Shown here: positions 35,677-58,616 of the stretch, in pieces
Layout: the number at the start of each line of letters is the position of its first letter
Numbering within the stretch: position 1 is the stretch's first letter
DNA from: Hyphochytrium catenoides
Lineage: Eukaryota; Protista; Hyphochytriomycota
Assembly (NCBI GenBank): GCA_900088475.1
Contig: FLMG01001065.1
Span: 4,093 to 68,092 of the forward strand
Direction: 5' to 3'
DNA length: 64,000 bases
Position numbers and translations under genes: made by a program
Notes under the pieces: model-generated
The model's input: the letters and a program-made list of their open reading frames with translations, nothing else
Database searches by the model: none
Told to the model about the DNA's origin: nothing

Positions 35677-38517
35677 TTAGAGATCCGTGGCGGACATCAG
35701 GAAATCTCTGAAGCTTTTCGGCTTCACTGCTGGGAACTTATCGTTCTGAAGATCATGAAGATGCGTCTTCTCGTTGACCTGGTCAGGGAGTGTTAACGGA
35801 AAAGGAATAAAAGAAGAGAGAGAGAGAGACAGACAGAGAGAGACAGAGAGAGAAAGAGAAAGAAACAGAGAGAGAGACATAGCGGGAGGGAGAGACGGAG
35901 AGGGAGAGAGAGAGACAGAAAGAGACAAAGAGAGAAAGAGAGAGACAGAGAGAGAGACAGAAAGGGAGAGAAAGAGAAAGTGAGAGAGAGGGAGAGAAAG
36001 AGAAAGTGAGAGAGAGAGAGAGACAGAGAGACAGAGAGGGAGAGAAAGCGAAAGTGAGAGAGAGACAGAGAGAAAGAGAGAGAGAAAGAAAGAGAGAGAG
36101 ACAGAGAGAGAGAGAGAGACAGCCAGAGAGAGAGAGAGAGGCGAGAGAAAGCTGATCTTACGCAGTAGAGCTGATACTGCAACTGGACAACTCTGGTGGC
36201 GAGACATACCAAGGTCAACCATACACAGGGGGCCGAGAAGAGACGAATCGAGAGAGAAAGAGAAAAAGAGAAAGGAAGGAGGACAAAGAGAACAGGAAAG
36301 AGAGAGAGAAAGTTGTCGGACCAAAGACAATGAACGGACAATAAAGTGCAAGACGGACGAGGGAATGGGGGAAACAAAGAGAGCGAGAGGGGAGAAGAGA
36401 AGGATAAGGCTTTGAAAGGTCAAGGCCCCTAACGCCGTCCTCTCTCCTGTCTAACGCTCTCTCTTTCCTTCTCTCTCTCTTTTCCTGTCTCTCTCTCTCT
36501 CCCCATCGCTCGGTCCAGCTTTAGCTTTTGCTCTCTGGGATTCTTTACGGTTGACTGCACTTCTGTCTCCCCGATCCTCCTACATCGTCTCTACCGCTTG
36601 TTTTGTCTTTGACCGCAGTCTCTTATCTCTCGTTCCTCCTTACCGATAAGTCTCTCTCTCTCTCTCTCTCTTTCTCTTTGTCTCCCCCTCTCTCTCTCTC
36701 TCTGTGTCTCTCTCTCTCTCTCTTCTGGGCTCTCTTTTGGTTCTGCCACTCTCTCAGTCTGTCTCCCTCCCTTCTTGTCCCGTTTCCTTCTTATCTATTC
36801 GCTGCCTCTTCGCTCCTTCTCTCTCTCTCTCTCTCACTCCCCTCTGGTTCCTTCCCCTCTCTCCCCCTCTCTCTTTCTCTCTTTCTCCCTTATCTGGCTG
36901 ACCTCCATGCTGGTGCCTGTTTGTCCTCTTTGAGCCTCTGGATCTCTTCCTCCAGGTCCTGAAGGCTGCCGAGACGATTCAACTTGACAGTCCAGCCTTT
37001 CACTGCCTCGTACAGCTGAGCCACCTCACACAGAGAGAGACGGTCGCCACGAACTAAAGCGAGAGCGAGAGCCAGAAAGAGAGAGAGAGAAAGAGAGAGA
37101 GAAAGAGAGTCAGCAAGAGAGAAAGAGTATCAGAAAGAAGAGCGTCATAGAGAGAGAGCGTCATAGAGGGAGAGTCAGGAGAGAGAGTCAAAGAGAGAGT
37201 CAAAGAGAGAGTTAGAGAGAGACAGGGTTACGGAGAGAGATGGAGGGGGCCATAGGTGAGGCTACCAAACATAGGGAGAGAGAGACATAAAGAGAAAAAC
37301 GTACAGGNNNNNNNNNNNNNNNNNNNNNNNNNNNNNNNNNNNNNNNNNNNNNNNNNNNNNNNNNNNNNNNNNNNNNNNNNNNNNNNNNNNNNNNNNNNNN
37401 NNNNNNNNNNNNNNNNNNCGAAGGCAAAGAGGGAAAAGAGACTGAAAAGGGTAACAGAGAAAAAAGGCCGGAGCGAGAAAGAGAGAGAGCATGCTCACCG
37501 TGCACATCTCCCACTACTTCTTCCTTTAGCACCGCCTCCACAGTGAAGGCAGCCGCATCTACACAGCCAGTAAATAAATCACTCCCTGGCAGCTTTGTCA
37601 TCTCTCTCTCTCTCTTTCTCTTCGTTTCTTCTCCCACACTCTTTCCGTGTTGCCAAGTCTCTCGCTTACCTTAGCTTTCACTCCCACTTCCCGTCTTTCT
37701 CCTTTCCTCCCGTTCTCTCCTTTCTCATCCTCTCTTTCTCTTTCATTCATATGCTGTGGCTCTCTTCCGTGTTCTCTCTCTCTCTCTCTCTCTCATCTGC
37801 TTACCTTCATAGCTGGTAAAGTCAATCTTCTCCTCTCCTGAGCCGTAGAAGTTCAAGGCCTTTGCCTCCTTGTCCCAGACGCCCAGAAACCCAAAGAGAA
37901 CCTCCATGAAGCAGCCGCAGAAGATGTGCACAGTGGACTGAGAGAGAGAGAGAGAGAGAATGATGGTGAAGGAGAGAGAGAGACGGCAAGAGAGAGAGAT
38001 GGAAGGAGGATACAGGGTCCAGAAGAAGATGGCAAGGAGAAGATTAGCTAGATGTTCTTTCTCTCCCTTGACCACCGCGAAACAATCGTGGTCGTCTCAC
38101 CTTCTCTGTCTCACTACCTTTCTCTTTCTCTCGCTTTTTCTCTCTCTCTCTCTCTCTTTCTCTCTGTCTATCTTAGAAAAGGAAAATCTCTGTAAGCACT
38201 AGCCATTCCCTCATTCTCACTTCGACCACGGCTCCTCGCTTCATTCTCTTTCTCTTCTGTCTCAGAGATTTCATACACTCTCTTACGCTCTCTCTTTCTG
38301 TCTCTCTTCCTCTATCCTCTTCTTCCAGCCTCATCTTTCCTCTAACGCTCTCTCTCTCTCTCTTCTCATTCTTCTTCCTCTGCCTTCGACTCTCTCCCTT
38401 ACAATGTCTTTGTGTTGGTCCGTGTACTCAGCGAACGCTCTCTGCCAGTCCTTGTGAGGGTGGCTGCCCGGCGGAAGGCGGCGATAGTCCATCGTAAAGT
38501 CAGAGGCCACGAATCGC

Positions 38518-38590
<73 letters not shown>

Positions 38591-39320
38591 AGCAGAGAGA
38601 GAAAACAAAAGCGAGAACGAGAAAAGCGTCAGCGACACAGAGGAAGAGCAAAGGGAAAGATCACATTGCTGTTGAGCTCTGCAAAGTATGATGTCCGACT
38701 GAAAAAGAAAATAAGTAGTTTCTCTTCCAACTCGGACTCCTCCGTTTGCTGCGGTTTGCCCGCCCTAGCCTCTCTCTCTTTCTTTTCTCTTTCTCTATCC
38801 CTACGTGGTCATCCCCAGAGGCCTTTCTCCGTCACCAGTATCTTTTTCTCTCTCTTCTTCTCTCTCTCTCTCTCGTCTTTCTCTCTTTCTTCTCTCTCTT
38901 ATTTCTTCTCTCTCCTCCTCCTCTCTCTCTCTCTCTCTCTCTCTCTTTTTCTTTCTCTCTCTCTCTCTCTCTCTTTTGGCTCTTTACCTTGACTCCACAG
39001 CTCCTAGCAGCGTCAAACAAGTTCTTCTGTCCCTCGAGAAAGACTCTCTCCTCTCCCACGACACAGGAGATGACCGCGAACTTGTCCTTGCAGGCTTTAT
39101 ACAGAGAATCACGGTCAAAGAGATCGCCCTCGAGAAAGACAATGCCTCTTTCGTCTCTCTCTCTCCCGCCAACTTTCTTCTTATCTCGTACAAGCCCAAA
39201 TATCTTTACTTCCTCTCCGCGGGTGCGGTGCAGATACTCTGTCACCAGAGAGCCTAGCCGCCCATTCGCACCAACGACAAGGAATTTTTTGGCGTTTACA
39301 TTCTCATAAGGCGTGATCAT
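35677..39320 (-). CDS. NmrA-like atypical SDR (NAD(P)-binding Rossmann fold); exons 39320-38988, 38516-38403, 37937-37805, 37558-37499, 37053-36903, 36192-36162, 35778-35677 (~307 aa)
   Basis: LVVGANGRLG glycine motif, EGQKNLFDAARSCGVK|RFVASDF, IDFTSYE|DAAAFTVEA, LQNDKFPAVKPKSFRDFL. All six introns are GT..AG and the exons sum to an open 924-nt frame. Confidence 0.85.
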
Positions 39321-39913
39321 CTTCTCTCTCTCTCTTTTCTTCGTCTTTTTGCTCTTCTTCTCTCTCTCTCTCGCTCTCTTAGCTCGCGTCTCTCCTCTCT
39401 CTCAGGTCCCTGCTTTCTTATATCTTTTTGTCTATCTCGATGCGGCCTCTCTCCTGTCTCTCTCGATCCGCTGTCTCTTCTCTTTTAGTGTTCGTAGAGT
39501 ATTTGTCAGTCTTTGGTTACCGATCACGGTTTTCAACTTGTGAGCTTTAGCAGAGATCGTAGACTGCAAGGAGGCTTTCGCGGCGGCAAAGAGTTAAAAG
39601 AGAGAGGAGAGAGAGAGAGAGAGAGAGAGTGAGAGAGAGAGACGGGTACGGGGAGAGAGAGAGAGAGATGACGCATGGGGATGGAGTGATGGACGGGACT
39701 GAAGCTAACTACTCCGTAGGAAGTATGGGATAAATTGGGGCAAAGATATGGGCAAAGACCAGAGGAAGGCTACAGACGAGTTCTTCTTGCAGCAGAAGAG
39801 GAAGCTATGATGAGATAGTTCTAGGGGGAAAGACGGCTTGATCTTGTTGGAGAGAAGAGAGAAGAAAGAGAGAGAGGGAGAGAGAGAGACAGAGAGAAGG
39901 CGGGGGAGAGAGA

Positions 39914-39983
<70 letters not shown>

Positions 39984-40299
39984 GCAAGATGGAATCAGAA
40001 CATGGGTCAAAGAAGAAGAGGACCAGCAAAAGAACAGGGCGACATGCGGGAGAGCGAAGAGAAAGGAAAGCAGCACCCTAAGTGCGGCTATGTTCTGATC
40101 TCTCTAACCGAACCAGCATTCTTATAGGTAATCAGAACCCTGGACGGTCCAGGTAGACAGGTTTGGGGCAGTTCTCAAGAAAGATTACGCGCAGCTGATG
40201 CGTTGTCTCGTCCTCTCCTTTCTTCCAGAGTGTTTCCACCTTATTGCTCTCCCTGCTTGTTCTCCTCTCTCTCTCTCCCTTTCTCTCTCTCTCTCTCTC

Positions 40300-43200
40300 T
40301 GTCTCGCTCTCCTATCTGTTGATGTGAGAGAAACCCAATCCATTCTGTCTGGGGGGGTTTCTAAGGCAAGAACGGTGGGGGTCTCTCTCTCTCTCTCTCA
40401 CTCTTCTCTCTCTTTCCCTTCGGCCTTCCTGTCTCTTTCTCTCTCTCTCTCTTTCCCCCTCTGTTGACGCAAAAAAAATTCAACCAATTCTTTTCTGGGT
40501 GGTGGACTCTAAGGGAAACAGAAGAGATTTGAGGCTGGGGCGGGTCTGTGCTTCTCCCTAAGGGTTGCCTTCTCTCTATCTTTCTGTCTGTCTCTCTCTC
40601 TCTCTCCCTCTGTCTCTCCATCCCTCCCTCTCTCTCTCTCTCCCTCTCCTCTGATGATGCAAAACAAACCCAATCGGGCGGATCTCTAAGCAAACAGCGC
40701 TTGATGCTGGGGCAGACTGTGCTTCCCCCTAACAATAACACCTGTTCCTCAACGACAAAAAAAAGTAATGGACTTCTCATCACTCATCTTCTTCCCAGAG
40801 CAACGAGGTAAATAACACTTCCTTCTTCCCTCGGTAAGGCTTCGGATTCACTCTAAGCAAACCGGCGGTCGTGGGCGATGCTGTTCGTCTCTTCTTCTCA
40901 GGCATCATTATGTTTCTTCTTCTCCTTCTTTTTTCTTCTTTATGTTATTAGGCTTTATCATGATGCCTGACAAGCTCTTCCATTCCTTGAATAGAGTGAC
41001 CAAGCAGGAGGAGGAAGCGGTGATGTGCGAGAGTATCGACCAAGAGGAGGAGGGGCTCGCTATTGACCTGTCCAAATCTTCATCATACCTCCTCTCTACG
41101 TCTTCTTGTTCTTCTTTCTCCATCTTCGTCTATATCATCTAAACTCTCTTTCTTCTTTCCCTGTCTCTGCCATTCCTTCTATGCTCTCATCAAACCACAG
41201 TCGTACTGATGGAAATGGCACTTTGTCTCTACCTTTCCTTACAAGGACGGTGCTGGCAGCAGGGAAAGACACGGCGAAGAGTGATGAGCATCTGTGACGC
41301 CCGTGGTGAGCTTCATCATATAAACGAAGAAAGAACACCTAAATTCCAATCCCAGCACTGTCCCATAACGAGTGTGCCATATACCATATAATGGAGCAGG
41401 AGAAGAAGAGGGGAAGGAAGAATCAAGATCCTCAGTCAAGGAGAAGTACAAGGAGGGAGATCCGTGGTGGGGAGAAGATAGGTGGTGGGTGCTGCTGTTG
41501 GCGGTAGTGGTAAACGCAGCCACTGTCTCGTTGATGGACCGTGGCGTACTGCCTACTATATGAGGAACAGGAAGAAGGATCGCTCGTGGGATGATGATGA
41601 AGAAGAAGGAGCAAAAGCTTTCAAATGTACTACGCTACGAGTCCTACCCCTTGGGCTGCAAATTGAAGTGATTGACCTCATGATGGAAGAGGAGCACATC
41701 CTCTTCGAGTAAGTAGCAAGGGGCTACTGGGACAGCGGGCAGGTGAGGAAGAAGGAAACAAGATCTGTGTTGGTGCATAGAAGAAGAGATTGTTCTCAGT
41801 CACTAGCTCTTTATGAAAAAAGCATATCGTGAAGCCCTGCTTCTTCGTAGGTGGAGGTCTTTGTGGTGGAGGACGGGCAAAGCAAGAAGAATCAATTATT
41901 AATAAAAATAGGAGTAGGAGGGGACAAAAGAGGTAAGGCCTTAAGCATCAAGAGTCTCGAAAAAAAGGAGGAAAATGATGGGTGGCTTTCTGTCAGCTTG
42001 GGACAGGGTGCAGGGAGGAGAATCACCTCCTGTCAACCTATCTGCTTCTCAATTGGTTCAGAAGACGCGAAGCAGAGTTGTCTGTTGGCTTCGACGCTGA
42101 AACCGGACAAGAGCCACGGTTCTATCTGTAGTAGATATAGAAAATGAGAACTATCAAGTGCTTGGATATGGATGGGCAGATCAACGACGACAGCATCGAA
42201 AGCGTGGAGCCGCTGGAGAAGAACTGAGGATGAGCTGCCCAAGGTAGGTCTAGGGAGTGAGCGAGACGACGTAGAAAGAGAAAAGTAATCACTGATACCT
42301 TAGGGATCGGGAGTAGCATAGTAGCACAGGAGAGTTCAAGAGGGGTTATTCTGAGGGGAAGTTCATCAATAGCGGTGAACAGAGAAGGTGACAGAGGAAG
42401 AAGAGGAAGCTTCTTTCTACATTGCTAAGAGCAGCTAGTCTTTTGCTTCGTGTTACAGAAGCAACCCAGTCATCAATAAAGCCGTTCTTCACCTTTCTGC
42501 TGCGCGCTTGTCGATCTTCAGTAGTGCTTTGTAGATCTGACTGTCGCCTTGGTGGCCAGCTCAGTCTACAAACTCTGCAGGGGAGCTTCCTATGTCTTCT
42601 GACGTCTGCTTCAGCTAAATAACCTTAGCTCCGAGTCAGCTAATCGATCCGTGGCACAGACCGAGTCTGACAACTTGCTCTGCTTCAGATAATCAGTAAT
42701 TGTCACACTGGGAGGAGATCGAGAGTTGTTGAGATTGAAGAGTGTCAGTTAACTTTTAATGCCACATTGTCATATAGCTCTAAAGAACTCATAATGGCTA
42801 AGAAGTGAATGGCGAAGAAGGAGACGGAGAAGGAGAAGAAGAAAGAAAAGAAGAAGGAGAAGAAGAAAGAGAAGAAGAAAGAGAAGAAGAAGAAAAATGA
42901 AGAGGAGGCGAGAGCTACAAAGCCCTGGACGGACTCTTCAACACATTCTGCTTCTCCGTTCTCACCATCAATGTCAGAAAAGGAAGAAGAATCATTGTTC
43001 AACACTTCCGCAATAATGATAGGAGACGGAGGAGGAGAAGAAGAAGAAGAAGGCGTGGCGCCGAGACGTTCATCATCATCACGGTCAATCATCCAAGCTG
43101 GAGCGGGGTCCAACGGGCTGAACAGGACTAGGCTTCAAGATCTGTAACGCATTCTTTTTGTGATGACAGAAGAGGATTGGTAAGGTTTGATGAGTCGTTT

Positions 43201-46200
43201 TTACTGGGTGGTATCGAATAGCCTAAACCACCAGATTACCAAATTCTAGGGAACGTTTCTGCAACTTTCCGAGGCTCTGATTGGTCAATCGATCTACTAG
43301 GAGACTCTCAGATCTGAAAAGGGGGTGCCACCCCCTTTTCAATTCACCATTAGGGTTCAGCACGCTTATTACATATTTTCTCAGGGATCGGCACTAGGTT
43401 AGTGGTTATTATTTCTTTCTGGTCCGAACAGCTTGGATTCGGAAGGCAGAGCACTTTCAGATCTTCGTGCTTGTTATCGATTCCTCTACCATCTGTCGGA
43501 AATAGACCCTAATTTCCTAGATCCTACCAGACTTTTCTCCTAGTACAACGTTGACGAACAACGATGACAACATGAACAACGATGCCAACATCCTCACATC
43601 CTCACCCTCATCGAAATCACTGCCCGAGCTTCAAGCTAAGAGGTTTTAGTAGAGATTTATTGACAGATGGTATCTCTCATCTGCCATCGCCGCCCTGGAT
43701 CTCCCCACCAAAAGAGGAGAAGGAGGATCGTCTTGTTCTCATAGTTCTCCCTCATGCAGTCCCACTGCTAATTGATGATAGCATAATCGAGTCAAGTAGT
43801 ACCTTTGCTTGTGAGCAAATAGCTGCTACTACGACAAAGATGATGCGTTCACATCTTCTCTGACTTTTGCATCCATTCTGAAGACTGAAGACGACTGCAT
43901 CTGAAGATTTTTATTGCGTTCGTGCCAAGAAGAGCATAGAACTTCTTCCTGTTCATTCACAGTACTCCCAAGCTATCACTTTAGATTGACCGCAGGAGTA
44001 ATAATATGAACTCACATGTTTTAGTGTCAAAGTAGCGTACTACTATTCTGGCTTTCACTCTGAACGTTTAGGAACTCGAGACCAGCTATTTGATAGCTTT
44101 GACCAGCCAAGTCCTAGGAGTCTAGGGCCATTCTGAAGTTCTGGTAATCTGGTGATTTGGTGGCTCCGGCTATTCGATACCACCCGCTATAATAAGAGAA
44201 ACGTCTTTACCGTCCACAAATCTAGGACTCCTGGTCATGATCCTAAAATTTTGGAGGGCATCCTAAAATTCTGGCAGGTGGCGAAACGGCTGAGCTCCTC
44301 CTGGAGAATGGCTGAATGGAGGCTCCTCATTGGTTGGGACAATTTGAGGAACTGTATTCTATTACGGATCTGAGATTAGTAGAATCTCATCAGATTGGCG
44401 TTCAAATTTATGAAACTATGGCCAATGTAAACCTTAGGCTTAACACTTGCCATAGTCAATAGCAGAGGAGATGCCCGCCTAGAGTTCACTTTTATGACAC
44501 CTTGGCGGCTTGCATCTAGACTGCTTTGTCCTCTCTCTTCTCTTGCTCGCTCGCTCTCTCCCTCTCCCTCCATCTCTCTCTCCCTCTCTTTCGCCCTCTC
44601 TCCTCCCTCTGTTGATGCATAACAAACCCAAACCATCCTTTCTGGCAGAGTTTCTGAGGAAAAACTGTGCTTCTCCCATAAGAGTTGCGTTCTTCCCTCT
44701 CTCTCTCTTTCTCTATTATCTCTCTCTCTCTGTCTGCTCTCTCTCTCTGTGCCTCTCTCTCTCTTCTAGGTCTCCCTCTGTCTCTCTCTGTCTCTCTGCC
44801 TTTCTCTCTCTCTCTCTCCTCTCTGTTGATGCAAAACAAACCTAACTCATTCTTCTTTCGGGGTGGTCTCTAGGAAGCAGTGCTTGATGCTGGAAGATGA
44901 CTGGGCTTCTATCTAATAATAACCCCTGTTTTCATAATCAATGACCACAAAGAATCAATGGACTCCTCATCACTCATCTTTCCAAAGGAACAAGGTAGAT
45001 AATAGAACTACTACTACTTTTCTCCTCGTCGGTGAGGCTTCGGACTCACTCTACGGAGGTGCGCTCTTCCCTTCTACCTCTCTCTCACGCTTTTGAAGCG
45101 TTGCTCTCTCTGCTTGGGCGCAGCAGAGGCAGGCAGCAGCTAGCTCAGGCGGTCGTGGGCGGTGCTGTTCGTCTCTTCTTCTCATCAGTGAAGCAGATCG
45201 AGCCCTCAGACTCGGCCTATGCTACTGATCGGTCGATTGGCTGGCTGGCACGGAGCTAAGGTTACTTCATTGAGTAGACGTAAGAAAACATAGGAAGCTC
45301 TTCTTCCGCAGAGTTTGTAGACTGAGCTGGCCACACCCAGACTGGTCAACCAGACTATCCCGCAACTCGGGACTCATACGACAGTCATATCTCAAAAGCA
45401 CTACTACTGAAGATTGACAATCGTGCAGCAGAAAGATGAAGAACGGCTTTATTGATGAATGGGTTGCTTCTTCTGTAACACGAAGCAAAAGACTAACTGC
45501 TGTTAGCAATGTAGGAAACAAGCTCCGCTCCCTCTTTCTGTCTCTTCCTCTGTTCACCACTACTACTACTAGTAGTAGTGAGCTTCCTTCATAATAGTCC
45601 CTCTTTACCTCTCCTAGGCTGCTACTCTGCTACTCCCTAGTAAAGGTGGTTCCGTGTCTAAATCTCTCTTTCCACGTCTTCCCTCTCACTCCCTAGACCA
45701 CCTACCTTGGGCAAGCAGCTTATCCTCACTGTTCTTCTTCTCCAGCTGGCTCCAAGCTTCCACGCTGTCATTGTTGATGATCTGCCCATACATATACAAG
45801 TACTTGGCTGTTCTCATTCCATATCTACTATAAATAGAATATTGGCTCTTTGTCCCGTTTCAGCTTCGAGTCCAACTCTGCCTCGCATCTTCTGAACCAA
45901 TCAAGAAGTAAATAGCTTGGCAGGTGATTCTCCGCCCTCCTCCTGCACCCTGTTACAAACACTCAGTCATTATGTGTCTTCTCTTTCTTCCTTCTTCTTT
46001 CTTCTTGTTATTAGGCTTTATCATGATGGCTGATTGCCTCTTCCATTTCTTGGATAGAGTGACAAGAAGAAGGAGACCAGATCTCTGTTGGTGAATAGAA
46101 GAGAAGATTGTTCACAGTCAGTCACTTTTTGTAGAAAGATACCTTGAGCCCTGCTTCGTGGGTGGAGCTCTTTGTTGTGGTGGAGGACGGGCACGAGAAG

Positions 46201-46350
46201 AACTAACTTCCAATAAAAAGAAGAAACGTCAGTTGTTCTTCGGCGCAAGACCCTGCTAATGGTGTAGAAGAGGAGTAGGAAGGCAAGAAAAGAGGTAAGT
46301 ATACAAGAGTTTCGAAAAAGGAGAAGAAATTGATGGGTGCCTTTCTGTCA
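40300..46350. repeat. Diverged segmental duplication with an internal inversion (40.3-42.7 kb vs 44.55-46.35 kb), probably decayed coding or TE sequence
   Basis: Direct matches 40650-40900/44820-45185, 40905-41010/45968-46075 and 41760-42000/46080-46350; inverted match ~42000-42690/45190-45955 (compare ORFs 42422+ and 45267..45560-). Confidence 0.75.
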
Positions 46351-48018
46351 TCAGCTACCCTCAACCATTTATAACTACTGCTATCTTACTAGAGGAAGAA
46401 AAGAAAGAGACTGAGAAGGCTTGCCCTCTCAATCCCTTGATGCAGCGAAGGGTTCCAACCAAACAACAAGAGAGTCAGCAACATCGGTCGGCAGTTCGGC
46501 GACCACTCCACTACTACTACTCAGAGGCTTGACCGCGCACTAATGAGCCCACTGCACTAATAGAAAGAAGCATCATCATAGAAAGAAAGATCATCATCAT
46601 CGACTGTCCACGTCAACATTTCTGTCGTTCTCGTACCATCTCTTGTACAATTGCTCTCTCTCTCTCTTATCTCTTCGCTGCTGGGCAGCCTCTCGTGCTG
46701 CTCCTCCGTCCCAGCACCAAACAAGTAGTAGACTCTCATCTAACAAACTCTTCATGGCACAAGAATGTGCGGATTCCAATCATCATTACCCCAACCCTGT
46801 CATTCTCTCTATTATTTACACATGGGTCTCACGGATGACGTAGGAAGAATGTGCGCAAGACTATCTTTATTGGTTGGCTTGAGCTTCGCTTGTGGCTACC
46901 ATTGTGACCGATAAAAGGACCTTGGCTTCCGATTTCCTAGGGAGACAGACAGATGAGGACAATGGGAAGAAGTGAGAAAGGAAGATACGTTCTACTCGTG
47001 TCCACGATCTTCGGCTTGCATCCTGGATACTTCTGCCGACAACGAGCTTTATCCTCCAATGCTGGCGGACTATTTTGAATAACATAGAACTAGAGGTTGT
47101 GTTTTGGCGTAGTGCCAAAGTTACAGTCCGCTCTTTGGAGTTCAAGGATATCACGCCGAGCCCGCAACATGGACGGACGCGGAAACAATGGAAGAGAAAA
47201 TTTTTAATCAAAGCTTGGGAAGAAAACCATAGAACTAGAGGAAAATTGGACAGCATCTTATCCATTCCAGGAACGTGCGTGGCAGACATGCAGGCTGGCA
47301 GAAAGAGCCAACCACAGAGCCAAACGCTGCTTCTTGTGAAGATGATGCTTCGTCATGGAAAAAGTCTATTATTGCAGGAAGATGGGCTTTATTGGACTAA
47401 AGTAAGCCTTTATTGGATGCAGGAAACTTCCACATGCACTCATAAAGGCGAGACAGAGTCTGCATAAAGGCGTTAATTGACCAAAGAAGCACATTGGCGA
47501 GATTGTGGTGGATAGTTAACGGAGAGAACTAAATGGAAAAGAGGTGGAAGAGGAAGAGAGAGTGGATAACACTTTGGGCTGGTACATAAGCCGTCTTTCG
47601 AATCTTGAGGTTTGAGGACCCACTCCACCTACGAATAAGCGGATGGGGCTGGTGTTTCTGATAATAATTAGACAATCGAGAATAAATAGTGACTTCTGGC
47701 TGCGGATGCTAGATTTATGCAGAGTGTTTGTTGGATCTTTTGGATAGGTGGGTGGGAGAGAGTTCGCTGCTGGTGAGCATCGCAAAAGAGCTAGAGCTAT
47801 TTTTATCAAGGAGAGGGTGGATGGGCATATAAGTGGTAGTACAGCCCTCCGCGAAGCCACACATTATGTTCCTGCAAGATCCTCGAACATTATAAAGGGC
47901 TTGCCGAGCCCATACATTACATGTCAGACAATGAAACGTCTGCGATGTGGAAGGGGTCGATGGTACATTTTGTGACACAGCGTTTGGAGAGGCCAAACAC
48001 TTCTTTGGATCACAGTCT

Positions 48019-48062
<44 letters not shown>

Positions 48063-48815
48063 TGGCTTTGCTCTCTCTTTCTCTCTACTCTATCTATCCA
48101 ACTTCCACTCACTGGACCTTTGAAAGCCACCAAACGCTTCGTCTCTCCTCTCCTATCTTTGCTTGTTGCTAGTGTCTCTCTCCCTCTCTGTCTGTCTGCC
48201 TCCTTACCTGCGCTAAATCTTTGTTGGCTCTCTCTCTCTTCCTCACTCATCCCTTTCGTGGAGAAGACTATGCTCCGACTTAGTGGCTGGTCTCTCCTCT
48301 CCCTTCCCCGCTCTCTCTGTATCCCTTGGATTTCTTTAACCTTAACGTTTTTCCGCCTAATAACCACGTTTCTTTCCACATTCCCCAGCAGAGAGACAGA
48401 GAGAGGAAGAGACAGAGAGAAATCAAGAAGAGAGTGAGACAGGAAAAGCCACCGATAAGCTTAGGGAGGGGGGAAGCAAGAAGGAAGACATAGGAGATAC
48501 ATGGCCAGTGGAAAGGGGAGAGGTAAACGCTGGGAGGAACATGACAGGGAGGGTGCGAGGAAGAGTGAGGGGGATAGAAGAAACAAGCCTCCTCTGTTCT
48601 CTGTGACGAGGGAGAGAGCGAGACAAAGAGCAAAGTCTTCGCTCCAGGACGGAGAAAGAGAGGAACAAAAGAGAGAACTCGGTTTGAGAGGGAGAGAGCG
48701 AAGAGAGATAAATTGAGAGGGAGAGAGCGAAGAGAGATAAAGAGCCAATGTACGGGTTCTAAGACCATTTGCTAGACAGAGAAGCAAAGAGTCACCTGCA
48801 TTCCCTTTTCCTGGA

Positions 48816-48865
<50 letters not shown>

Positions 48866-49530
48866 CTTTCTCTCACTTTATAGAAATCAGCAGGCTCCAT
48901 CATCTTACGCTCTGACCCTACGATTTCGTCGAAGTCCTTACATTTTCCCCTTACGGAAGCTTTTAATCCACCTGTCATTTGTGAGCCAGTACGAGAACGG
49001 CATGTGCCCCACTTTCTTGCTTCGCTCTCTTTCCTTTCCTTTGCCTCCCTTCTTCCCTATCCCCTCTTATCGCCTACTGCCTTAATAATCGCTCTTTGCA
49101 CTCTTTTGCGGCGCTGTCTGTGATACAACTCTCCTCCCTCTCTCTCTCTCAGCCTTGTCGGACAGTGCCACCCGCTTGCCCTCAGCGTATTAACTCTTCC
49201 CTCTGACAGGACTAACTCACGCCACACAGTGACTCTCTCTCTCTCTTTTTCTCTCTCGCCTCGAGCTCGGCTCCATTTCTCTGGAGCAACTGCATTGTCT
49301 CAGCATTGTCTCTCGCTTTTCCTGCACTTTGAAGATTGTTGAGCTCTGTCTCTGGCGCTTACCATCGGCCTCGAATCCGGCAAGATGGAGGAGGTCAACA
49401 AAATCTCGTAGTGGGTCTCCTCTCTCTCTCTCCCTCTCCCGTTTTGTCTCGATTTCCTCCCTTCTGCCAATTCTCGGTATCGCTCTCTTCCTCTACTTGA
49501 AGGCCTTTCTCTTGTGACAAAGAGAGAGCG

Positions 49531-51811
49531 ATGTTGCCTACTCCAGACTCATCGCTAGAGCAGCAACACGGCGCTCTCTCTCTCTCTCTTTCTTCTATCG
49601 CAATGAAAAAGAGAAGAGCAGATGGTGATCTTGGGCAAAGAGACAGGTTAACACTGAAAGAGGTGGTCATGGATGTGGATAGGGGGAAGGCCGAGGAGAG
49701 AAAGACTGAAGAGCCAACAAACGATGCTTCATTCGGAGAAGGGGAGAGGGTAAAAATGACGACCATTCCTCCTCCTCGCACTTCTCTTTCTGTTCTGGCG
49801 ACAAGAGCAGCCTTCCCTCATCTCTGTGTGGACCACTGCGAAGAGACGCCACCGGCAGGAGAAGAAGAAGCAGACCCCGGACAAAGGGAGTCTTCCTCTT
49901 TTCTCCGCTCCGTTTCTCCTCTCCGCTCTCTTCTCTCCCAGTTGTTCTCTCCCCAGTCTCCGCGTTCACCTTCCTGGTCAAGGCGCCGTCTCCAGACGTT
50001 CCTTCTTTTCTCTGTCCTTGTCGTGGTGGCGATCTGGAGCTTTGCTCCGCCGCCAACCTCTCTCTCTTCTTCTTTCTCATCTTCTTCTCCCGCTTTCTTC
50101 TCTTCTCTTTCTTCCTCTTCCCCAGGGAGAAACCTACGAAGGACCGCCAGCGCTCATCCCTGGGAGCAGACGTTAGAGGAGCTCTCGGGCACGACAGTAA
50201 GAAGAGAAGAAAGGGAAGAGAGAGGAGAAGAGGGCATAGCGCGCCCTCCCTCTCTCTCTTCGCTCTCCCCTTCTCTCTCCCTCTCCTCGTCGTCCTCTTC
50301 TCCTTCTTCCTCTCTCTGTCCGCCAGCCGCGGGACATGACGCCGCTGATAACTGGAAATTCGTTACCGTGACGTCTGATATTCTGATCACTGTGGCGTAC
50401 TATGCGATCCCCTTAGAGCTCAACTACTTCCAGAAGCAGGTCAAACTGCCTGAGAAGTTTGGCGGAATCTTACTGCTCTTTCAAATGTTTATATGCTGCT
50501 GCGGCTCCACGCACCTGATCGCCGTGTGGCAGCCCTGGTACAAGTTCTACTTTCTCTCCTCGATGGTCAAGCTCCTCACCGCCCTGGTGTCGATGTTGAC
50601 AGCCTGCGTTCTGGTCCATGTGATCCCTAAGGCGCTGGCCCTGCCAGGGATGGCGGAGAGACTGGAAGAAGAGTTAGGCGTTAGGGTGAAGAATGAATCG
50701 GATCTGAGAGAGAAGAACGAGATGCTGATGAAGTTTAGGTCCGCCTCTCAGAACATTGGGGACGCGGCGGGCGCAACGGAGATGTGCCGAACGGCCGCGA
50801 GGGAAATGTGTGAGAACATTGAGACAGTCAGCAGCGTGGCGATCTTTCTTCCTTCCTCTCTCACCCGCTTTGGGATCGGACTCTCTTCTTGTTCTTCCTC
50901 CGCTTCTGATGCTGGGGAAGAGGAGGAAGAAGAGGAGAAAGTAGAGGGAGACAGTAGTAAGGAAAACGATTATTTCTGCGCGGCAGAGTTCTCGAAAAGG
51001 TTCCCAGGTAGTGCACTATATAGCTTCTCCTGGAAAGAGGTAACGCTCAATTCAGATCGAGAAGAGATTCTCTCCGACTCTCTCTTCCCTGGCAACCGGC
51101 TGGTCTCTCTCTCGGAGGAGAGTGTGGAGAAGCTTATAGAGGGAGGAGCAGGAAATGAGGGAAAGAAGACCAAGACTGTTGCCTTTCCTTTCCACTCTAC
51201 CTCTCTCGTGCAGTTCTCGGTAGATGACAGTTCCAAGAACGGGCTTGTCCTCATCTCTTCCACCTCTCCCAGCAGTCGATGGACGCTGAAGAGATCAGAA
51301 GTCACTTTCTTAGAAGACATCGTCCATCAGGTAGAGATTGCCCTGTCTCAGGCTGTACAGATGGAGAAAGAGAAAGAGAGAATGTACGAGCTCTCTCTCC
51401 AGCAGAAGAAGAACGCAGAACTGGACAAAGCCAAGCAGTTGGCGGAGATGGAGAGTAAGCTTACGACGGAGTTCCTGGCCTCGATGTCTCATGAGATCCG
51501 GACACCAATGAATGCAATCATTGGGTTTGTCAGCTACTTATTGCAGTCTCCGGGCCTCTCTGCAGACCAACATGAGATTCTGCAGACGATTTCTTCGAGC
51601 TCTCAGACGCTCCTGACCATCCTCAACGATATATTGGACTTCTCCAAGGCGGAGACACGGCAGCTTGTGCTGAAGGAAGAGGTGTTCTCTGTGAGGCACT
51701 GCGTGGAGACAGCGCTACAGCTAATGGCAGGAAGTGCTGATAGCAAGGTGCTGTTCCCTTCCTTTCCTCGGCCTATTTTTCTACTCTCTCTTTTTGTCGG
51801 GTTTTCTCTGT

Positions 51812-51842
<31 letters not shown>

Positions 51843-54550
51843 CCCCTCTCTGTTTCCCCTCTCTGTTTCCCCTCTCTCTTTCCCCTCTCTCTCCATGGAC
51901 TCTCCATTCTCTTTCTCTCTGTGTTCTTTACTTTCATTCTCCTCTCTTTCTCTCTGCCATTTCTCTCTCTTTCCCTCCTCTTTTCTCTTCACTTTCATTC
52001 TGTAAGATTCTCTTGTTCTTCCTTTTCCGTCTGCCACCTCCATTCCTCCCTCTGTCTCTCTCCCTGTCTCTATAGTTCTCTTCCTTCAATTCTGATGGAC
52101 GAGGCGCCACTGCTTTCCAAGCCTACTGTGGATCTGGTTGCTCTCTGTCTGCCTAGCTTTTCCTACACTCTGTCTCTCTTCTCTGATGGCATTAAAATCC
52201 TCTCTATGCCTGAGTTCTTTTACTAACGCAACTGATTTGTTTTCCTACGTTTTACCGTCCCTTCTGCCTCCTCTCACCTCTCCGCTTGCTACTTACTCTA
52301 CCGGCTTCGGCTTCCTCTCCTCTCTGTACCCTGCGTGCTCTCGTTCAATCTCTTTTTCTCCTCTCTCTCTCTCTTTCTCCCCCTTTCTACTCTCTCCCTC
52401 CTCTCTCTCAGAGCCTAGATCTGAATTATTTCATGGAGGAAGACGTACCAGACGTGGTCTTCGCCGATCCTTATCGCCTGCAGCAGGTTATCCTTAACCT
52501 GCTGAGCAATGGGATCAAGTTCACAGAGAGAGGAGAAGTCTTTATTATTGTCTCTCTCCAAGGGTCCCCCGCTCTCATCGAGGAACTCGGGAGAGGAGAA
52601 GGCAGTGGAGAGTACATCGCACCAAAGGATCCTTCGTCTCGCCATCTCCTAGGTGTAGAAGAAGAGTCCTCTCTTGAAGGGGAGGAAGAAATAGAGACCG
52701 CAAGAAACAGAGAGAAGAGAGAGTTGCGAAGAAGAAGACGGAAAGGAGAGAAAGGCGTATACCACCAGAAGAATGGTCACGTGGCGGCCAACGGACAAAT
52801 TGGCGGAGGGAGAGAGCGAAAGGTAAAGGGAGGCGGAGGCAGGGATGGGGACGAAAAAGAAGAGGAAAAGGAGAGCAAGAGGGACAAGAGAGAAATAGAG
52901 ACAGTGTTCTTCCACGTCATAGACACGGGGATCGGCATCCCTTCTTCCTCTCTTCGCCTTCTTTTTCAGAAGTTCAAGCAGGTGGACTCTTCGATCGGAA
53001 GGAGATACGGAGGGACGGGCCTTGGGCTGGCCATCTCCGCGAAGCTGGTACATATGTACAGGGGAATGATCAAGGTGACCTCACAGCCAGGGAGGGGCTC
53101 GGCCTTCTCATTCTCGATGGAGCTGCCCGTCGTGAGAGAGACAGAAGATGAAAGAGAAAGTTTTCTCTCTTCGTCCTCTACGTCTCCCTGCTACTGGGCG
53201 GTGGATGAGGCAGCTGGGCGGCTGAGCTCCCAACTGGGCGATGAACTGGAAAAGGACGTGGTCGCTCCTGCGCTCTCTCGGAAGAAAAGCAGCGGAACGG
53301 GTTCTCTCTCTTCGTCGTCATCTTCTTCTGCAGCGTCTCTCTCTTCCTACTGGCTTTTGGCCTTGGTGGCCTCTGCCAGTGTGAGGACAAGAGATGCCAC
53401 GGAGCAGCTTCTGAAGAGTCTCAACGTGGAAAAAGTCCACACATTCAATACCGTCGAGTCTCTTCTTGACTTTGCGAGGGACAGCCGCGGAAGGGAGGAA
53501 GAAGACGAAGGGAAAGAAGAGAGAGGAGAGACGGTGGGAGGGGGAGAGAAGAGAAAAGAGAAGAAGAGAAGAAGAACCAGGGTGACGCTGGCCCTCGTTG
53601 ACGAAAATCTTCTTTGTCACATCGTCCCTGGAGGAGAGACAGGCGCACGATACGATGCGTTCGTCTCTCTCCCTTCGACCTACGCCATCACTCTTGCCCG
53701 TTCTTCCCAGACTGCGGCGGATCTCTCTTGTCCTCTTCCTCCGGCCTATCTCCACAGAGCGCTGTGCAAGCCTGTCCGCAGAGATCTGCTCAGGAATCAC
53801 CTGGGTGCGATCGTTGAAGCCCTCGAGGGCGGAGAGAGAGACGAGAGTCTCTCCGGAGGAGGAAGAATGGGAGGAGAGGAGGCAGGTCGGCTCAATCTCT
53901 CCTCTACTTCTTCTCAATTGCCTAGAATTGGATCCAGAGGCAGACGCGGAAGAGGTACGTGGACGTCCTCCAGGCAGGAGATCCCGAAGCAAGTGAAACG
54001 TGTCCTGGAGCAAGTGGCCGTCCTCATTGTAGACGATAACGCCGTGAACCGCAAGGTAATGATCCGTCTGCTGGAGCTTTTTGATATGAGGAACGTCCAA
54101 CAGGCGGCGAACGGCTATGAGGCGATCTCAATGGTCGCTGATGGGCAGTTTGACATCGTTTTTATGGACGTGGCGATGCCGGTGCTGGACGGGTTCTCAG
54201 CCACCCGACGGATCCAGTCGGAACTCTCTTCCTCATCCTCCTCGTGTCCTTCTGTCCTTCAAGGACAAGAAGAGAGAGCGGTAGAAGGAGGGAAGGTCCC
54301 TGAAAGGAAGATGAAGAGAGAAGAAGAGGAGAGAGGGAGCAGTGATGAGGCTAAGAAGGAAGAGGTGGCGAGGAGAAAGAGCTTCACAGGTCGGAGAATC
54401 CCTTGGATCATTGCAATGACAGCTAGCACTTTGATGGAAGAGAGACAGCTCTGCTTTGACGCGGGGATGAATGACTTCCTGGCCAAGCCCATCACTCCTC
54501 CAGAGGTTGCCAACGTCCTCACGCGATTTGTGCAGCAAATTGGGGCGTAA
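49531..54550 (+). CDS. Ethylene-receptor-like (ETR1-type) hybrid histidine kinase: ethylene-binding TM domain, GAF-like region, HisKA, HATPase, pseudo-receiver, receiver; exons 49531-51747 and 52412-54550 (~1450 aa)
   Basis: SDILITVAYYAIPLELNYF...FICCCGSTH...KLLTALVS...LVHVIP; H-box FLASMSHEIRTPMNAIIG; splice gives ADSK|SLDLNYFMEEDVPDVVFADPYRLQQVILNLLSNGIKFT; DTGIGI, LFQKFKQVD, GGTGLGLAIS; receiver VLIVDDN, VFMDVAMPVLDG, IIAMTA, MNDFLAKP. Confidence 0.93.
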
Positions 54551-57181
54551 GAGAGAGCGGGGACGGACGGTTCGGAGGAGGGCAGGGAGGGAAAGAGAGG
54601 AAAAGAGAGAGAGAGAAAGGAGAAGAATGGGGTGGTGGTTCTCCTGCTCTCTCTCCTCTTCTGTCCCTTCTCTTCTTTCACGGCTGAGGAATTTTTTAGG
54701 TAGCTTCGTATATGCTTCGAGAGGAAGAGGAGAGCATTCCCATTCAGGAAACAGCGAAAACTTGGAGAGCGATGATCTCACTCTGTCCCTCTTTCTCTCT
54801 TCTTTCTCCCTTTCTTATTTTGCGCTTAGTAGCCCATGTCTGCCTGGCAGTACCTGTCAGCGTCTTCCTCCTGCCTTTGCCACCTTTTGTTACCGGGGAT
54901 GGCAGGGTCTCGGGTTTTGACTCTCACTCATGGTCTCTCTCTCTCTCTACATTCCCGCTACTTGCTTCGACTATTGCTTCCTCTCCCACTCTGCTTCCAC
55001 TGTTTTTCAAGGGATTTAACACGCGCGTTTCTGTCCCTGTTTTGACTGTGGGGGAAAGGAGCCTCATCCTCTCATTCCCTCGTCTTTTTGTTTATCAGGA
55101 GCTTTCCTTCCTTGGTTCCTTCTCTCTCGTCCTCTCTCGATGAAGCTGCAGAAATAGCTGAGTGTAAAGAATGACCTAAGTGAAGAAGCTGCTTTGCCTG
55201 CCAGTACGTTGTAGAGCCATCTCGTTAGACTGAGGGAAGACACGCTTCTCTCTACATTCTCCTTGCCTCTCTCGTGCTGCTAGCTGGCTCTCTCTCTCTC
55301 TGTATGTTCCTCCTATCGATAAGACCCCTCTTTAGTTCGCTTCTTCCTTGGGGTTCTCTATATCTCTGTCCACTTCTCTCTCTCTCTCTTCCCATGCATG
55401 GCGATACCAGTGCTAGAGCCGCCTAGCTCTAAGAGAGATATCCTTGGACAAGGCGAAGAGCTCGTCTCCTACCCAAGTGGCGCTTCTCTCCACTTCCACA
55501 GAAGACATTGTGCTTGACTGTATTCAATACATAGCCAGCTCTATTGTTGCCTTCTTCTTCTCTCTCTTTCTCTCTCATTCTGTCTCTCTTTCTCTCTCTC
55601 TGTCTTCAGACTTTCTGCTAGAAGGCGTCTCTTTCTCCTCACTCTCACCTCACTCGTGGTCTTTTCTCCATGCTGCTATAATTCTTTTATCTGTCTATGT
55701 CGTTAGCAGAAGGAAAGACAACAGCGAGAGACAACAAAGGGAAACAGGGAAGAGAAGAGAAGCTCGTGTCTCTCCTTTTCTCTCTTCTCTCTGTCCTGTT
55801 GGTGCATGTTCACTTTTTCTCTTCTCGCGTGCGACTGCATCTCATTAGATGTTAGATTTCAATTCTGTAAAAACATGACTAAAGAGGGAAAGGAGAGAGA
55901 GAGAGATGGGAAATGTGAAGGGAGTCTCTTGTGTGCGTGAAGAGGGAGAGCAAGAAAAGAGAGAGGCAATGGAGACCAGTCTAATAACACTGAAGAGCGG
56001 AGGAAAAGAGAGAGAGATAAGACAGAAAGAGAGTGTCTTTGTGGGTGAAAGAGGCAAAAAGGCGATGACACCAGCAGCCAGACGGGCCACCATGAGTGAA
56101 GAAAGAGAGCAGGAAGACAAGAAGACCCCAGCAGATAAATGGAGACCTACAAGCCGCAGGGATCACTAGCGGCAGTAACACAACCGCCGTTAGCGGGAGC
56201 AGCAGGGTGTCTCTTCGTCTACCCATAACTCTTCGATGAGGAAAGCTACTCCTAAGTTCACCTTACTTTCATCTATTCTAACTCATTCCTCTTTCTTCTC
56301 CCTCCATTCCCTTGAGCTGGAGGACGCGCTAGCCGGAGTAATGGTAAATTGGGCTCATAATTTGTTGAAAATCGAGTGAGGGGTGAGCTCTGGTGGCAGA
56401 CTGTGGGGGGGAAGAGAGAGACTTGGAAAGCTTGTCAGAATCTGAGAGGGTTAGCTCAAGGTCTGCATGACGGGAACTCTTGATTTCCTCTCTTGCCACT
56501 GCCTTTACAAGCAGAGACATAGTCACTTTGCTCCCCGTGGTTGGCGGCTCATACTGAAGCCAACAGCTTCCAACAGCTCTGTCTCTCTCTCTCCATCTCT
56601 CCCTCTCCCTTCTTTCTGCGATCTCACGATCTCCCACTCTCGCTTCGCGTCCCACTCTCATTCTCCCATGTGAGCCGGGCCCTCTTCTTGCCCCCTTCAG
56701 TCCTTCCTCTCTCTCCCTCTACTATTCCCTGTTTCCTCTACTATTCCCTGTTTCCTCTCTGCTTCTCTCTGTTTACTTTTGCTCTCTCTGCTTCTCTCTC
56801 CCTTGTTGCTTCTATCTTTCTCGTTCTTTCTCTCGCATCTCTTTCTGTGCCAGGGACCCACAATGGGCGAACTGATAACTGACAGTGCACACTTGGTTGC
56901 CCTGTTCTTTAATAGAAAAGACGGCAAAAATCAGTTATTTGCATTGCAAATAAGCGTCTGAGTAATATTCCTTATTTATGAAAAACAGCAGGGATCTGGC
57001 GTCAGATTCTGAAGACCTCAGGGTAGGGTGGGTACTGGACTCCCTCCCTTTCCCCCTCCCACTGCCAACACAATGTCCGCCCTCCATGTCTTCCCCCTTT
57101 CGGTCTCTCCCTGTCTCTTGCTTGCCTTCACCGACTCTGTCTCGCACCTGAGGCGCATCTGATCATCTTATTCCTGGTTGT

Positions 57182-57223
<42 letters not shown>

Positions 57224-57830
57224 GGTGGCCAGCCTTCGCTTCTTATTGGAAGATACGCGTGCAATGGCCCTAGGATGGCGCAAGAGAGAAAGAGAGAGAG
57301 AGAGCGTGAGGAGAAGAGACACTTTTTTCGTCAGAACGTAGTGAGAAAGGCATTGAAGGAGAAGAGTTAAGGGATAGGTTGAGGGGATAATAATGAAGAA
57401 TGACTAGTGCCATGGGGAGGATCCGATTGCGACAGCAGAGAGTTGAAGAGAGGGAGAAACTGGCCTTCACACACATTCGTCTCGTCCTCAATATTTCTGT
57501 GGGATCGGCGTCCAAGAAGTGATCAATCTAGCCGGGACATGACCTCCTCCATATCCCTTTTTTTCATCTCTCTCTCTCTCTTTCTTTCTCTCTGTCTCTC
57601 TCCCTTCTCTCCTTTCTGTCAGCTTCATCAGCCTCTGCCCTCAAACTAGAACTATGTGAGGAGAGAGGAGATAACTTTGTGTCAACCATTGTTTGCTTGC
57701 TGTCTCTTCATCACTATTCATCTTTCACTTTCCAGCGCAAACGTACACACAGAAAGTCACCCCGGCTGACTGGCAGCAACCACTAAAGCAGTAAGAAGAG
57801 ACGAGAAGAAGAGTTGATCAATTTGTAGCC

Positions 57831-58616
57831 ATGATAAAGCTCGTCTCTCTTCTCGCCGCGTCCTCCCTCCTGCTCATCCTCACGCCATCCACCTCAGAAG
57901 CCTCAAAGATCCGCGGCGTTGGTGACATTCACCGCGATAAAGATCTGCGCTACTGCGACCCGACCACCGGAGATGAGTGCGGCACGTGCCTGACCGCATC
58001 CTTCGCGGAGGCGGGAGAGGGCGTCGGCTGGTTTGATTCTTCCTTTGGCCTCTGCTGGGGAGAGAAGAAGGATAAGGCCTTGGTGTCCCTCTGGGTAGAC
58101 CTCAGAGATGTGCTTAAGAAGGACAACCGCCACGTCCTGCCTGCGAACTGCTCTCTGGAAACCATGACTTACCATCTGCACAGCAAATGGGAGCATCCTG
58201 AGGGCAAGGATTGGGGCCTAGGAGCAGAGTGCGGACCCGCGCTCACCAGCGGGCACTACGATCCCACCTTCGCTTGCGGACCCTCTTCAGAGCACGTCGC
58301 GAGCGGGGCGTGCAAGGACAAAGGAAAGGACCCTGCGCAGTATAAATGTCTGGGGAACTACCAGGAGTATCGGAAAGACCCGCAGATCTGCGAGCTGGGA
58401 GACACGTCGGGAAAGGGCGGATACTTGAAGTTCCCTGGGAAGAAGCGCGTCGTGGAGGAGACCTTCGTTGACGTGACGCCTCCATCTTACTACGAGTTCA
58501 GGAACGGGAAGTATAAGAGTCTTGTCTTTCATTGTGCCGGAGGACAAAGAGCTTTCTGTGCCAAGCTTGAGCTCAAAGAGTGTGGCGGGGGACCTGAGAA
58601 GGAGAAGGCTTTTTAA
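57831..58616 (+). CDS. Secreted Cu/Zn-SOD-fold protein, probably a Cu-only superoxide dismutase
   Basis: Signal peptide; YHLH, GHYDP, CELGDTSGK, SLVFH...QRAFCA; Cys-rich; no obvious pair of extra Zn-ligand His between GHYDP and GD. Confidence 0.75.
   Translation: MIKLVSLLAASSLLLILTPSTSEASKIRGVGDIHRDKDLRYCDPTTGDECGTCLTASFAEAGEGVGWFDSSFGLCWGEKKDKALVSLWVDLRDVLKKDNRHVLPANCSLETMTYHLHSKWEHPEGKDWGLGAECGPALTSGHYDPTFACGPSSEHVASGACKDKGKDPAQYKCLGNYQEYRKDPQICELGDTSGKGGYLKFPGKKRVVEETFVDVTPPSYYEFRNGKYKSLVFHCAGGQRAFCAKLELKECGGGPEKEKAF

Follow-up and report, generated by a model that had tools for sequence, protein, structure and literature searches.

An ETR1-type hybrid histidine kinase gene of early-diverging-fungal subtype predicted in the pseudofungus Hyphochytrium catenoides

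Does a fungus-like protist carry a receptor for ethylene, and where would such a gene have come from? These questions are raised by a locus of Hyphochytrium catenoides, a hyphochytrid belonging to the stramenopile pseudofungi that is free-living, saprotrophic and zoosporic, and has no plastid. The locus occupies positions 49531-51747 and 52412-54550 on the forward strand of a 64,000-nucleotide stretch of contig FLMG01001065.1 (positions 4,093 to 68,092), which is called the window here and to which all coordinates refer. An earlier, sequence-only reading had claimed an intact ETR1-type hybrid kinase in a non-plant, fungus-like protist; the host is indeed such an organism, and the domain order was confirmed with Pfam, AlphaFold and Foldseek. 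On balance, the locus is probably a nuclear, single-intron gene of H. catenoides whose product is a hybrid histidine kinase anchored in the membrane, of the ETR1 family and the early-diverging-fungal subtype; with it, this saprotroph of decaying plant and algal matter most likely registers ethylene. The two exons were always searched, folded and placed in trees separately, and residues are numbered within their exon.

The ethylene- and Cu(I)-binding domain ETR1_N (Pfam PF25487), with its three transmembrane helices, was found at 50362-50643 (exon-1 amino acids [aa] 278-371) with 96.3 bits against a cut-off of 27 and an E value of 1.4e-27, covering profile positions 5-97 of 97. Hydropathy peaks lie at aa 277-295, 306-333 and 339-375, and three helices are placed at model residues 2-33, 37-62 and 69-98, with predicted local distance difference test (pLDDT) values of 89-97, in an AlphaFold model of the sensor half (aa 272-739, 43-sequence alignment, mean pLDDT 87). 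Searched by sequence, the PDB yielded no solved transmembrane domain of ETR1. The protein has the motifs TSDILITVAYYAIPLEL and FICCCGSTH together with K347, and the ETR1-equivalent residues listed in the sequence-only reading were all recovered at or near the positions it had proposed. D283 (50377-50379), Y290, I293, P294, I321, C324 (50500-50502), H328 (50512-50514) and K347 (50569-50571) stand at the offsets expected for D25, Y32, I35, P36, I62, C65, H69 and K91 of ETR1; for Tyr32, Ile35, Pro36 and Ile62 we assume this ETR1 numbering, equivalence being set by the offsets from D283 and C324. The putative Cu(I) ligands, C324 and H328, lie one turn apart on helix II in alignment columns that are invariant or nearly so, as are the columns of Y290, I293, P294 and I321. 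Among the domains with a readable motif in a sample of 191, Asp occupies the position of D283 in 178 of 179 and Lys that of K347 in 169 of 175. Functions in the binding of copper and ethylene and in passing on the signal have been described for Asp25, Cys65, His69 and Lys91 of ETR1 (PMC10266040), and the H. catenoides protein has every residue of known importance for Cu(I)/ethylene binding and for phosphotransfer.

Upstream of this domain, by about 100 residues, hydropathy analysis located the additional N-terminal hydrophobic segment that the sequence-only reading had pointed out (aa 153-178, RLQTFLLFSVLVVVAIWSF..., 49987-50064, Kyte-Doolittle maximum 2.2), in a stretch whose coding status is predicted. 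Positive charges precede the segment; if it were oriented N-in, the binding domain would keep the topology that it has in ETR1.

Downstream, at 50644-51291, the binding domain is followed by a long connecting helix carrying the LEEELGVRVKNE motif, which is common to the fungal homologues, and by an alpha/beta domain with an acidic low-complexity loop. In the sensor-half model, the three membrane helices lead into a connecting helix of 40 residues, the alpha/beta domain and the two helices of the dimerization and histidine phosphotransfer (DHp) domain. Pfam gave no GAF match in exon 1. The modeled alpha/beta domain matched the solved GAF domains 6ozb, 3ci6, 3p01 and 3trc in Foldseek (template modeling [TM] scores 0.55-0.69, E about 1e-4), and an Atlas feature search also indicates GAF-HisKA families. 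By its predicted structure, the region between the binding domain and the kinase is thus the GAF fold suspected in the sequence-only reading, although Pfam misses it.

The kinase core and the C-terminal receiver retain every motif that the sequence-only reading had reported. HisKA/DHp lies at 51466-51657 (Pfam E 1.1e-19), with the H box SHEIRTPMN and the phospho-acceptor His654 at 51490-51492; its matches in the PDB include GacS, RetS and the DHp domain of ERS1. The catalytic domain HATPase_c (52412-53131, Pfam E 1.2e-21) contains the N box LLSNGIKFT (52499-52525), the G1 box DTGIGI (52922-52939), the F box FQKFKQ (52964-52981) and the G2 box GTGLGLAI (53012-53035). A charged low-complexity insert of about 117 aa (52556-52906) separates the N and G1 boxes, at the same place as an insert in the Allomyces protein. 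The receiver at 54017-54526 (Pfam Response_reg E 1.4e-21) is intact, with LIVDDN (acidic pair in the region 54023-54040), FMDVAMP with the phospho-acceptor Asp586 (54167-54169), AMTAS (Thr in the region 54407-54427) and LAKP (Lys in the region 54476-54493). It is split by a charged low-complexity insert of about 53 aa (54212-54406), and solved receivers in the PDB matched it in two halves (E 1e-19). Because of these inserts, both HATPase_c and Response_reg were matched by Pfam in two pieces.

Between the catalytic domain and this receiver, the sequence-only reading had placed a degenerate first receiver. A receiver-like domain was found there by structure, at 53357-53854, and was not significant by sequence: a phmmer search of the PDB yielded E about 1, and the hhalign probability with a receiver alignment was 3%. 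The region was modeled as a (beta-alpha)5 CheY-like fold with a core pLDDT of 74-95 and matched solved receiver domains with TM scores of 0.65-0.75 in Foldseek. It keeps Asp397 (LALVDEN, end of beta-3) and Lys453 (CKPV, beta-5), and ASAS replaces the Mg-binding acidic pair after beta-1; the domain is probably not phosphorylated. The region aligns across the fungal homologues, and all full-length fungal homologues have a spacer of 130-400 aa between HATPase_c and the receiver. This spacer appears to be a conserved degenerate receiver domain, as in residues 861-891 of the Synchytrium endobioticum protein, and such a domain is not mentioned in the papers considered here.

Ethylene sensing by phosphorelay in H. 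catenoides, as suggested in the sequence-only reading, would take the following course. Cu(I) would be held by C324 and H328, with D283, and ethylene would bind to the copper; the resulting change would pass through a polar bridge between D283 and K347 to helix III and reach the DHp domain by way of the long connecting helix and the GAF domain. Autophosphorylation of H654 would then change, probably being lowered by analogy with ETR1, and the phosphoryl group would be passed to D586 of the C-terminal receiver, on to a separate histidine-containing phosphotransfer (HPt) protein and finally to a response regulator. The pseudo-receiver, lacking the Mg-binding acidic pair, would most likely serve as a docking or dimerization module and not as a phospho-acceptor.

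The output could be of another kind, with ethylene sensed and the signal relayed mainly through a bound Raf-like kinase or through Ca2+ permeation via the transmembrane domain. Plant ETR1 signals mainly via CTR1 according to a 2020 review, and Ca2+ permeability of plant ethylene receptors is reported in two recent papers (PMC13261662; bioRxiv 2025.10.20.683334). In the H. catenoides protein, however, every kinase box has been preserved, as have Asp, Thr and Lys of the receiver, an indication that phosphotransfer is under selection. CTR1 and EIN2 are components of the plant lineage, no search for them was made here, and, unlike in plants, the downstream CTR1 and EIN2 pathway is not expected in Hyphochytrium. 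We therefore regard an output other than the His-Asp phosphorelay as quite improbable.

Several points weigh against the preferred reading as a whole. The loop between the second and third transmembrane helices is 3 residues shorter than in ETR1, the sole difference in spacing, and an unusual CCC run (C322-C324, 50494-50502) ends at the copper-ligand Cys. The same 2020 review states that ethylene or copper binding or function has been studied in no non-plant eukaryotic homologue. The HPt and response-regulator partners of the kinase are assumed in the scheme; that the gene is transcribed, spliced at the modeled junction and translated from the modeled start is predicted from sequence; and the first ~270 codons are CT-rich, of low complexity and open also in other frames.

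The points at the metal site bear on a different function, in which the domain binds copper and responds to something other than ethylene, be it another small unsaturated or gaseous ligand or the copper or redox status, or in which the protein is a constitutive scaffold. The CCC run noted in the sequence-only reading is real and was found only here among the 191 sampled ETR1_N domains, five others having CC; the run may provide an additional ligand for the metal or a site of lipidation. In the portions of the literature considered, ethylene binding is proven for SynEtr1 of Synechocystis and AzoEtr1 of Azospirillum and is otherwise shown only for plant receptors, with none for fungal or protist homologues. 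Against this, all residues tied to high-affinity ethylene binding are kept (the D, C, H and K and the Y/I/P/I positions), and the same set gives ethylene binding in the tested members of the family (PMC10266040). A signal other than ethylene is accordingly rated as unlikely, and ethylene as the probable ligand.

The gene model was predicted from open reading frames (ORFs) and homology. Two forward-strand ORFs, at 49531-52005 and 52286-54550, are separated by a CT-rich stretch, and joining them across one spliceosomal GT-AG intron gives a product of ~1451 residues. Exon 1 (49531-51747, 739 codons) encodes the N-terminal extension, the ethylene-binding domain, GAF and HisKA; it is open from the ATG at 49531, with an in-frame stop upstream at 49498. 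Exon 2 (52412-54550, 712 codons plus stop) encodes HATPase_c, the pseudo-receiver and the receiver. The CT-rich intron of 664 nt (51748-52411) has its GT at 51748 and its AG at 52411. Homology to Allomyces AMAG_07058 runs on in the frames on either side; exon 1 ends in AAG followed by GT, and the junction between K739 and S1 of exon 2 falls between AMAG_07058 residues 562 and 563 with no gap.

The start of exon 1 is less sharply defined, with candidate start codons at 49531, 49603, 49669 and 49756. Since the N-terminus is of low complexity with several open frames, the start codon and the extra hydrophobic segment stay candidates. An alternative N-terminal intron from GTAAGA at 50197 to CAG at 50326, read from the sequence by eye, was rejected; at 130 nt it would break the frame. 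The intron consists of the same CT-rich (TCTC) low-complexity sequence as a large part of the putative coding region for the N-terminus (49531-50340), and as this sequence holds several open frames, ORF-based gene models are unreliable in the H. catenoides genome.

That the locus is a silent relic, a mis-assembly or a contaminant is nevertheless very improbable. Expression is presumed, the N-terminal part is of low complexity and the closest relatives are fungal; on the other side stand 4.3 kb of coding sequence without a stop, with all catalytic and binding motifs intact, an intron in the CT-rich style of the host with a junction exact by homology, and a contig shared with the H. catenoides gene HcKCR1. 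Contamination from a fungus was rejected, as identity to any fungal protein is at most 43%.

Relatives were collected by HMMER with aa 272-610 as the query against 1.84 billion cluster representatives, which returned 6243 proteins at E values up to 0.001. No near-identical self match was among them, and the Hyphochytrium proteome is therefore not in the library. Of the 150 best matches, 40 were characterized, and in this set the top-ranked named matches were all early-diverging fungi, led by Conidiobolus (E 1.8e-39, 43% identity) and including Basidiobolus, Neoconidiobolus, Entomophthora, Blyttiomyces, Rozella, Allomyces, Entrophospora, Synchytrium, Paraphysoderma and Amoeboaphelidium. The remaining characterized matches were bacterial, by name or by ETR1_N-PAS architecture, and the 40 included no protein from a plant or a diatom. 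In a word-index search, Allomyces AMAG_07058, which has been named as a fungal ethylene-receptor homologue (Herivaux et al. 2017), was the best named match, followed by cyanobacterial ETR1_N-PAS kinases; the Allomyces protein as query retrieved a family from Blastocladiomycota and Rozella. Three word-index searches gave no plant receptor, by a method that is insensitive (the binding domain alone gave 2 matches). No viral relative was seen in a scan of IMG/VR with fungal-type motifs, and no relative in a single-protein scan of metagenome contigs. The homologues in cyanobacteria and early-diverging fungi mentioned in the sequence-only reading were thus met both in the library searches and in the literature.

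Phylogenetic trees were built from fungal and bacterial sequences, with plant, diatom and amoeba sequences left out. In a quick tree of 182 binding domains, a strongly supported branch set Hyphochytrium, together with the fungi, apart from 161 bacterial-type rows, and all named matches on the eukaryotic side were fungal. A careful tree of exon 1 (36 rows, 385 columns, bacterial outgroup) placed Hyphochytrium as sister to Entomophthoromycotina, Rozella and Blastocladiomycota with support of 99/98; chytrids, an aphelid and Glomeromycotina fell outside the group containing Hyphochytrium. The separate exon-2 tree placed it in the same group with support of 90/98, the best identity being 41% to Paraphysoderma. 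The comparison of binding domain and kinase core that had been suggested along with the sequence-only reading hence gave one grouping for both halves, so that the sensor and the kinase core share one history. In an approximately unbiased (AU) test, monophyly of the fungi with Hyphochytrium outside cost 11 log-likelihood units and was not rejected (p 0.063).

The nested position among fungi fits a gene transfer from fungus to pseudofungus. Old paralogy or sampling bias can also explain the nesting, as plant, diatom and amoeba sequences were unsampled. We put forward, tentatively and as somewhat less than an even chance, that the whole receptor gene moved between the hyphochytrids and an early-diverging fungus close to Blastocladiomycota, Rozella or Entomophthoromycotina, perhaps carried by one of the known giant-virus insertions of the genome; both groups live as zoosporic saprotrophs on decaying matter from plants and algae. 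If the transfer were true, ethylene sensing would count among the traits that pseudofungi took over from fungi, in contrast to the plastid inheritance proposed for diatoms.

The architecture was compared with that of known systems. With the early-diverging fungal homologues (AMAG_07058, Catenaria CaHHK1/2, Rozella RaHHK2 and Conidiobolus CcHHK3; Herivaux et al. 2017; group XVIII, Kabbara et al. 2019), the protein shares ETR1_N, the LEEELG.R..NE linker, GAF, HisKA, HATPase_c with an insert between N and G1, the receiver-like spacer and the receiver, and the gene is collinear over its full length with AMAG_07058. The fungal homologues have N-terminal extensions of 120-230 aa, several with an extra hydrophobic segment. 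The Hyphochytrium protein differs from them in its stramenopile host, in an identity of 30-43%, in a much longer low-complexity N-terminus, and in the CCC run and the 53-aa receiver insert.

Like Arabidopsis ETR1, the protein has a three-helix domain with equivalents of D25, C65, H69 and K91, a GAF domain and a receiver. It resembles subfamily 1 plant receptors in a histidine kinase with all boxes and subfamily 2 receptors (ETR2 and EIN4) in the extra N-terminal hydrophobic segment, and it differs from plant receptors in the additional pseudo-receiver, the large low-complexity inserts and in being about twice as long. The bacterial and cyanobacterial ETR1_N kinases, which are split from the group of fungi and Hyphochytrium by the strongly supported branch, are 40-55% identical in ETR1_N over ~120 residues and carry PAS or phytochrome modules instead of the linker and GAF. 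The diatom proteins FsolaHK12-15 of Fistulifera solaris, compared by description, have in common with the H. catenoides protein a stramenopile host, three transmembrane helices and all the conserved binding residues (Kabbara et al. 2019). They were the first ethylene-receptor homologues reported in stramenopiles, alveolates and Rhizaria (SAR) and were attributed to plastid endosymbiosis (Kabbara et al. 2019).

Ethylene-receptor homologues have already been described in cyanobacteria and other bacteria, where they are functional, and in early-diverging fungi, Capsaspora, Acanthamoeba and the diatom Fistulifera. The 2020 review lists homologues of cytokinin or ethylene receptors in SAR clades, a "free-living pseudofungus" among them, and the gene family is not a topic of the 2018 Hyphochytrium genome paper. 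The H. catenoides gene is a further member of a described family, probably already catalogued in passing, and its novelty had been overrated in the sequence-only reading, with the class known from fungi, Capsaspora, Acanthamoeba and diatoms and the pseudofungus listed.

Of moderate interest are the affinity to fungal genes and the prospect of testing function for the first time outside plants and bacteria. An ETR1-type sensor is placed here in a plastid-less, fungus-like stramenopile, and its affinity to fungal and not algal receptors weakens a red-algal plastid origin of the stramenopile ethylene-receptor homologues. The gene is also one more candidate for transfer from a fungus to a pseudofungus. 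As H. catenoides is culturable and forms zoospores, an ethylene receptor of a non-plant eukaryote could be tested for function in it for the first time.

Around the gene, the neighboring ORFs of 130-260 codons at 35677-48768 and 54700-58616 had no Pfam match. The same 64-kb window holds two genes used in optogenetics, HcKCR1 and HcKCR2. HcKCR1 (PDB 8h86) is 100% identical over both exons to an ORF at 11387-13060 on the reverse strand of the same contig, a match that assigns the window to H. catenoides. It stands there as one ORF of 557 codons, and the solved protein covers only ORF residues 1-194 and 432-506; the ~237 codons (~711 nt) between the matched parts therefore look like an in-frame, stop-free intron.

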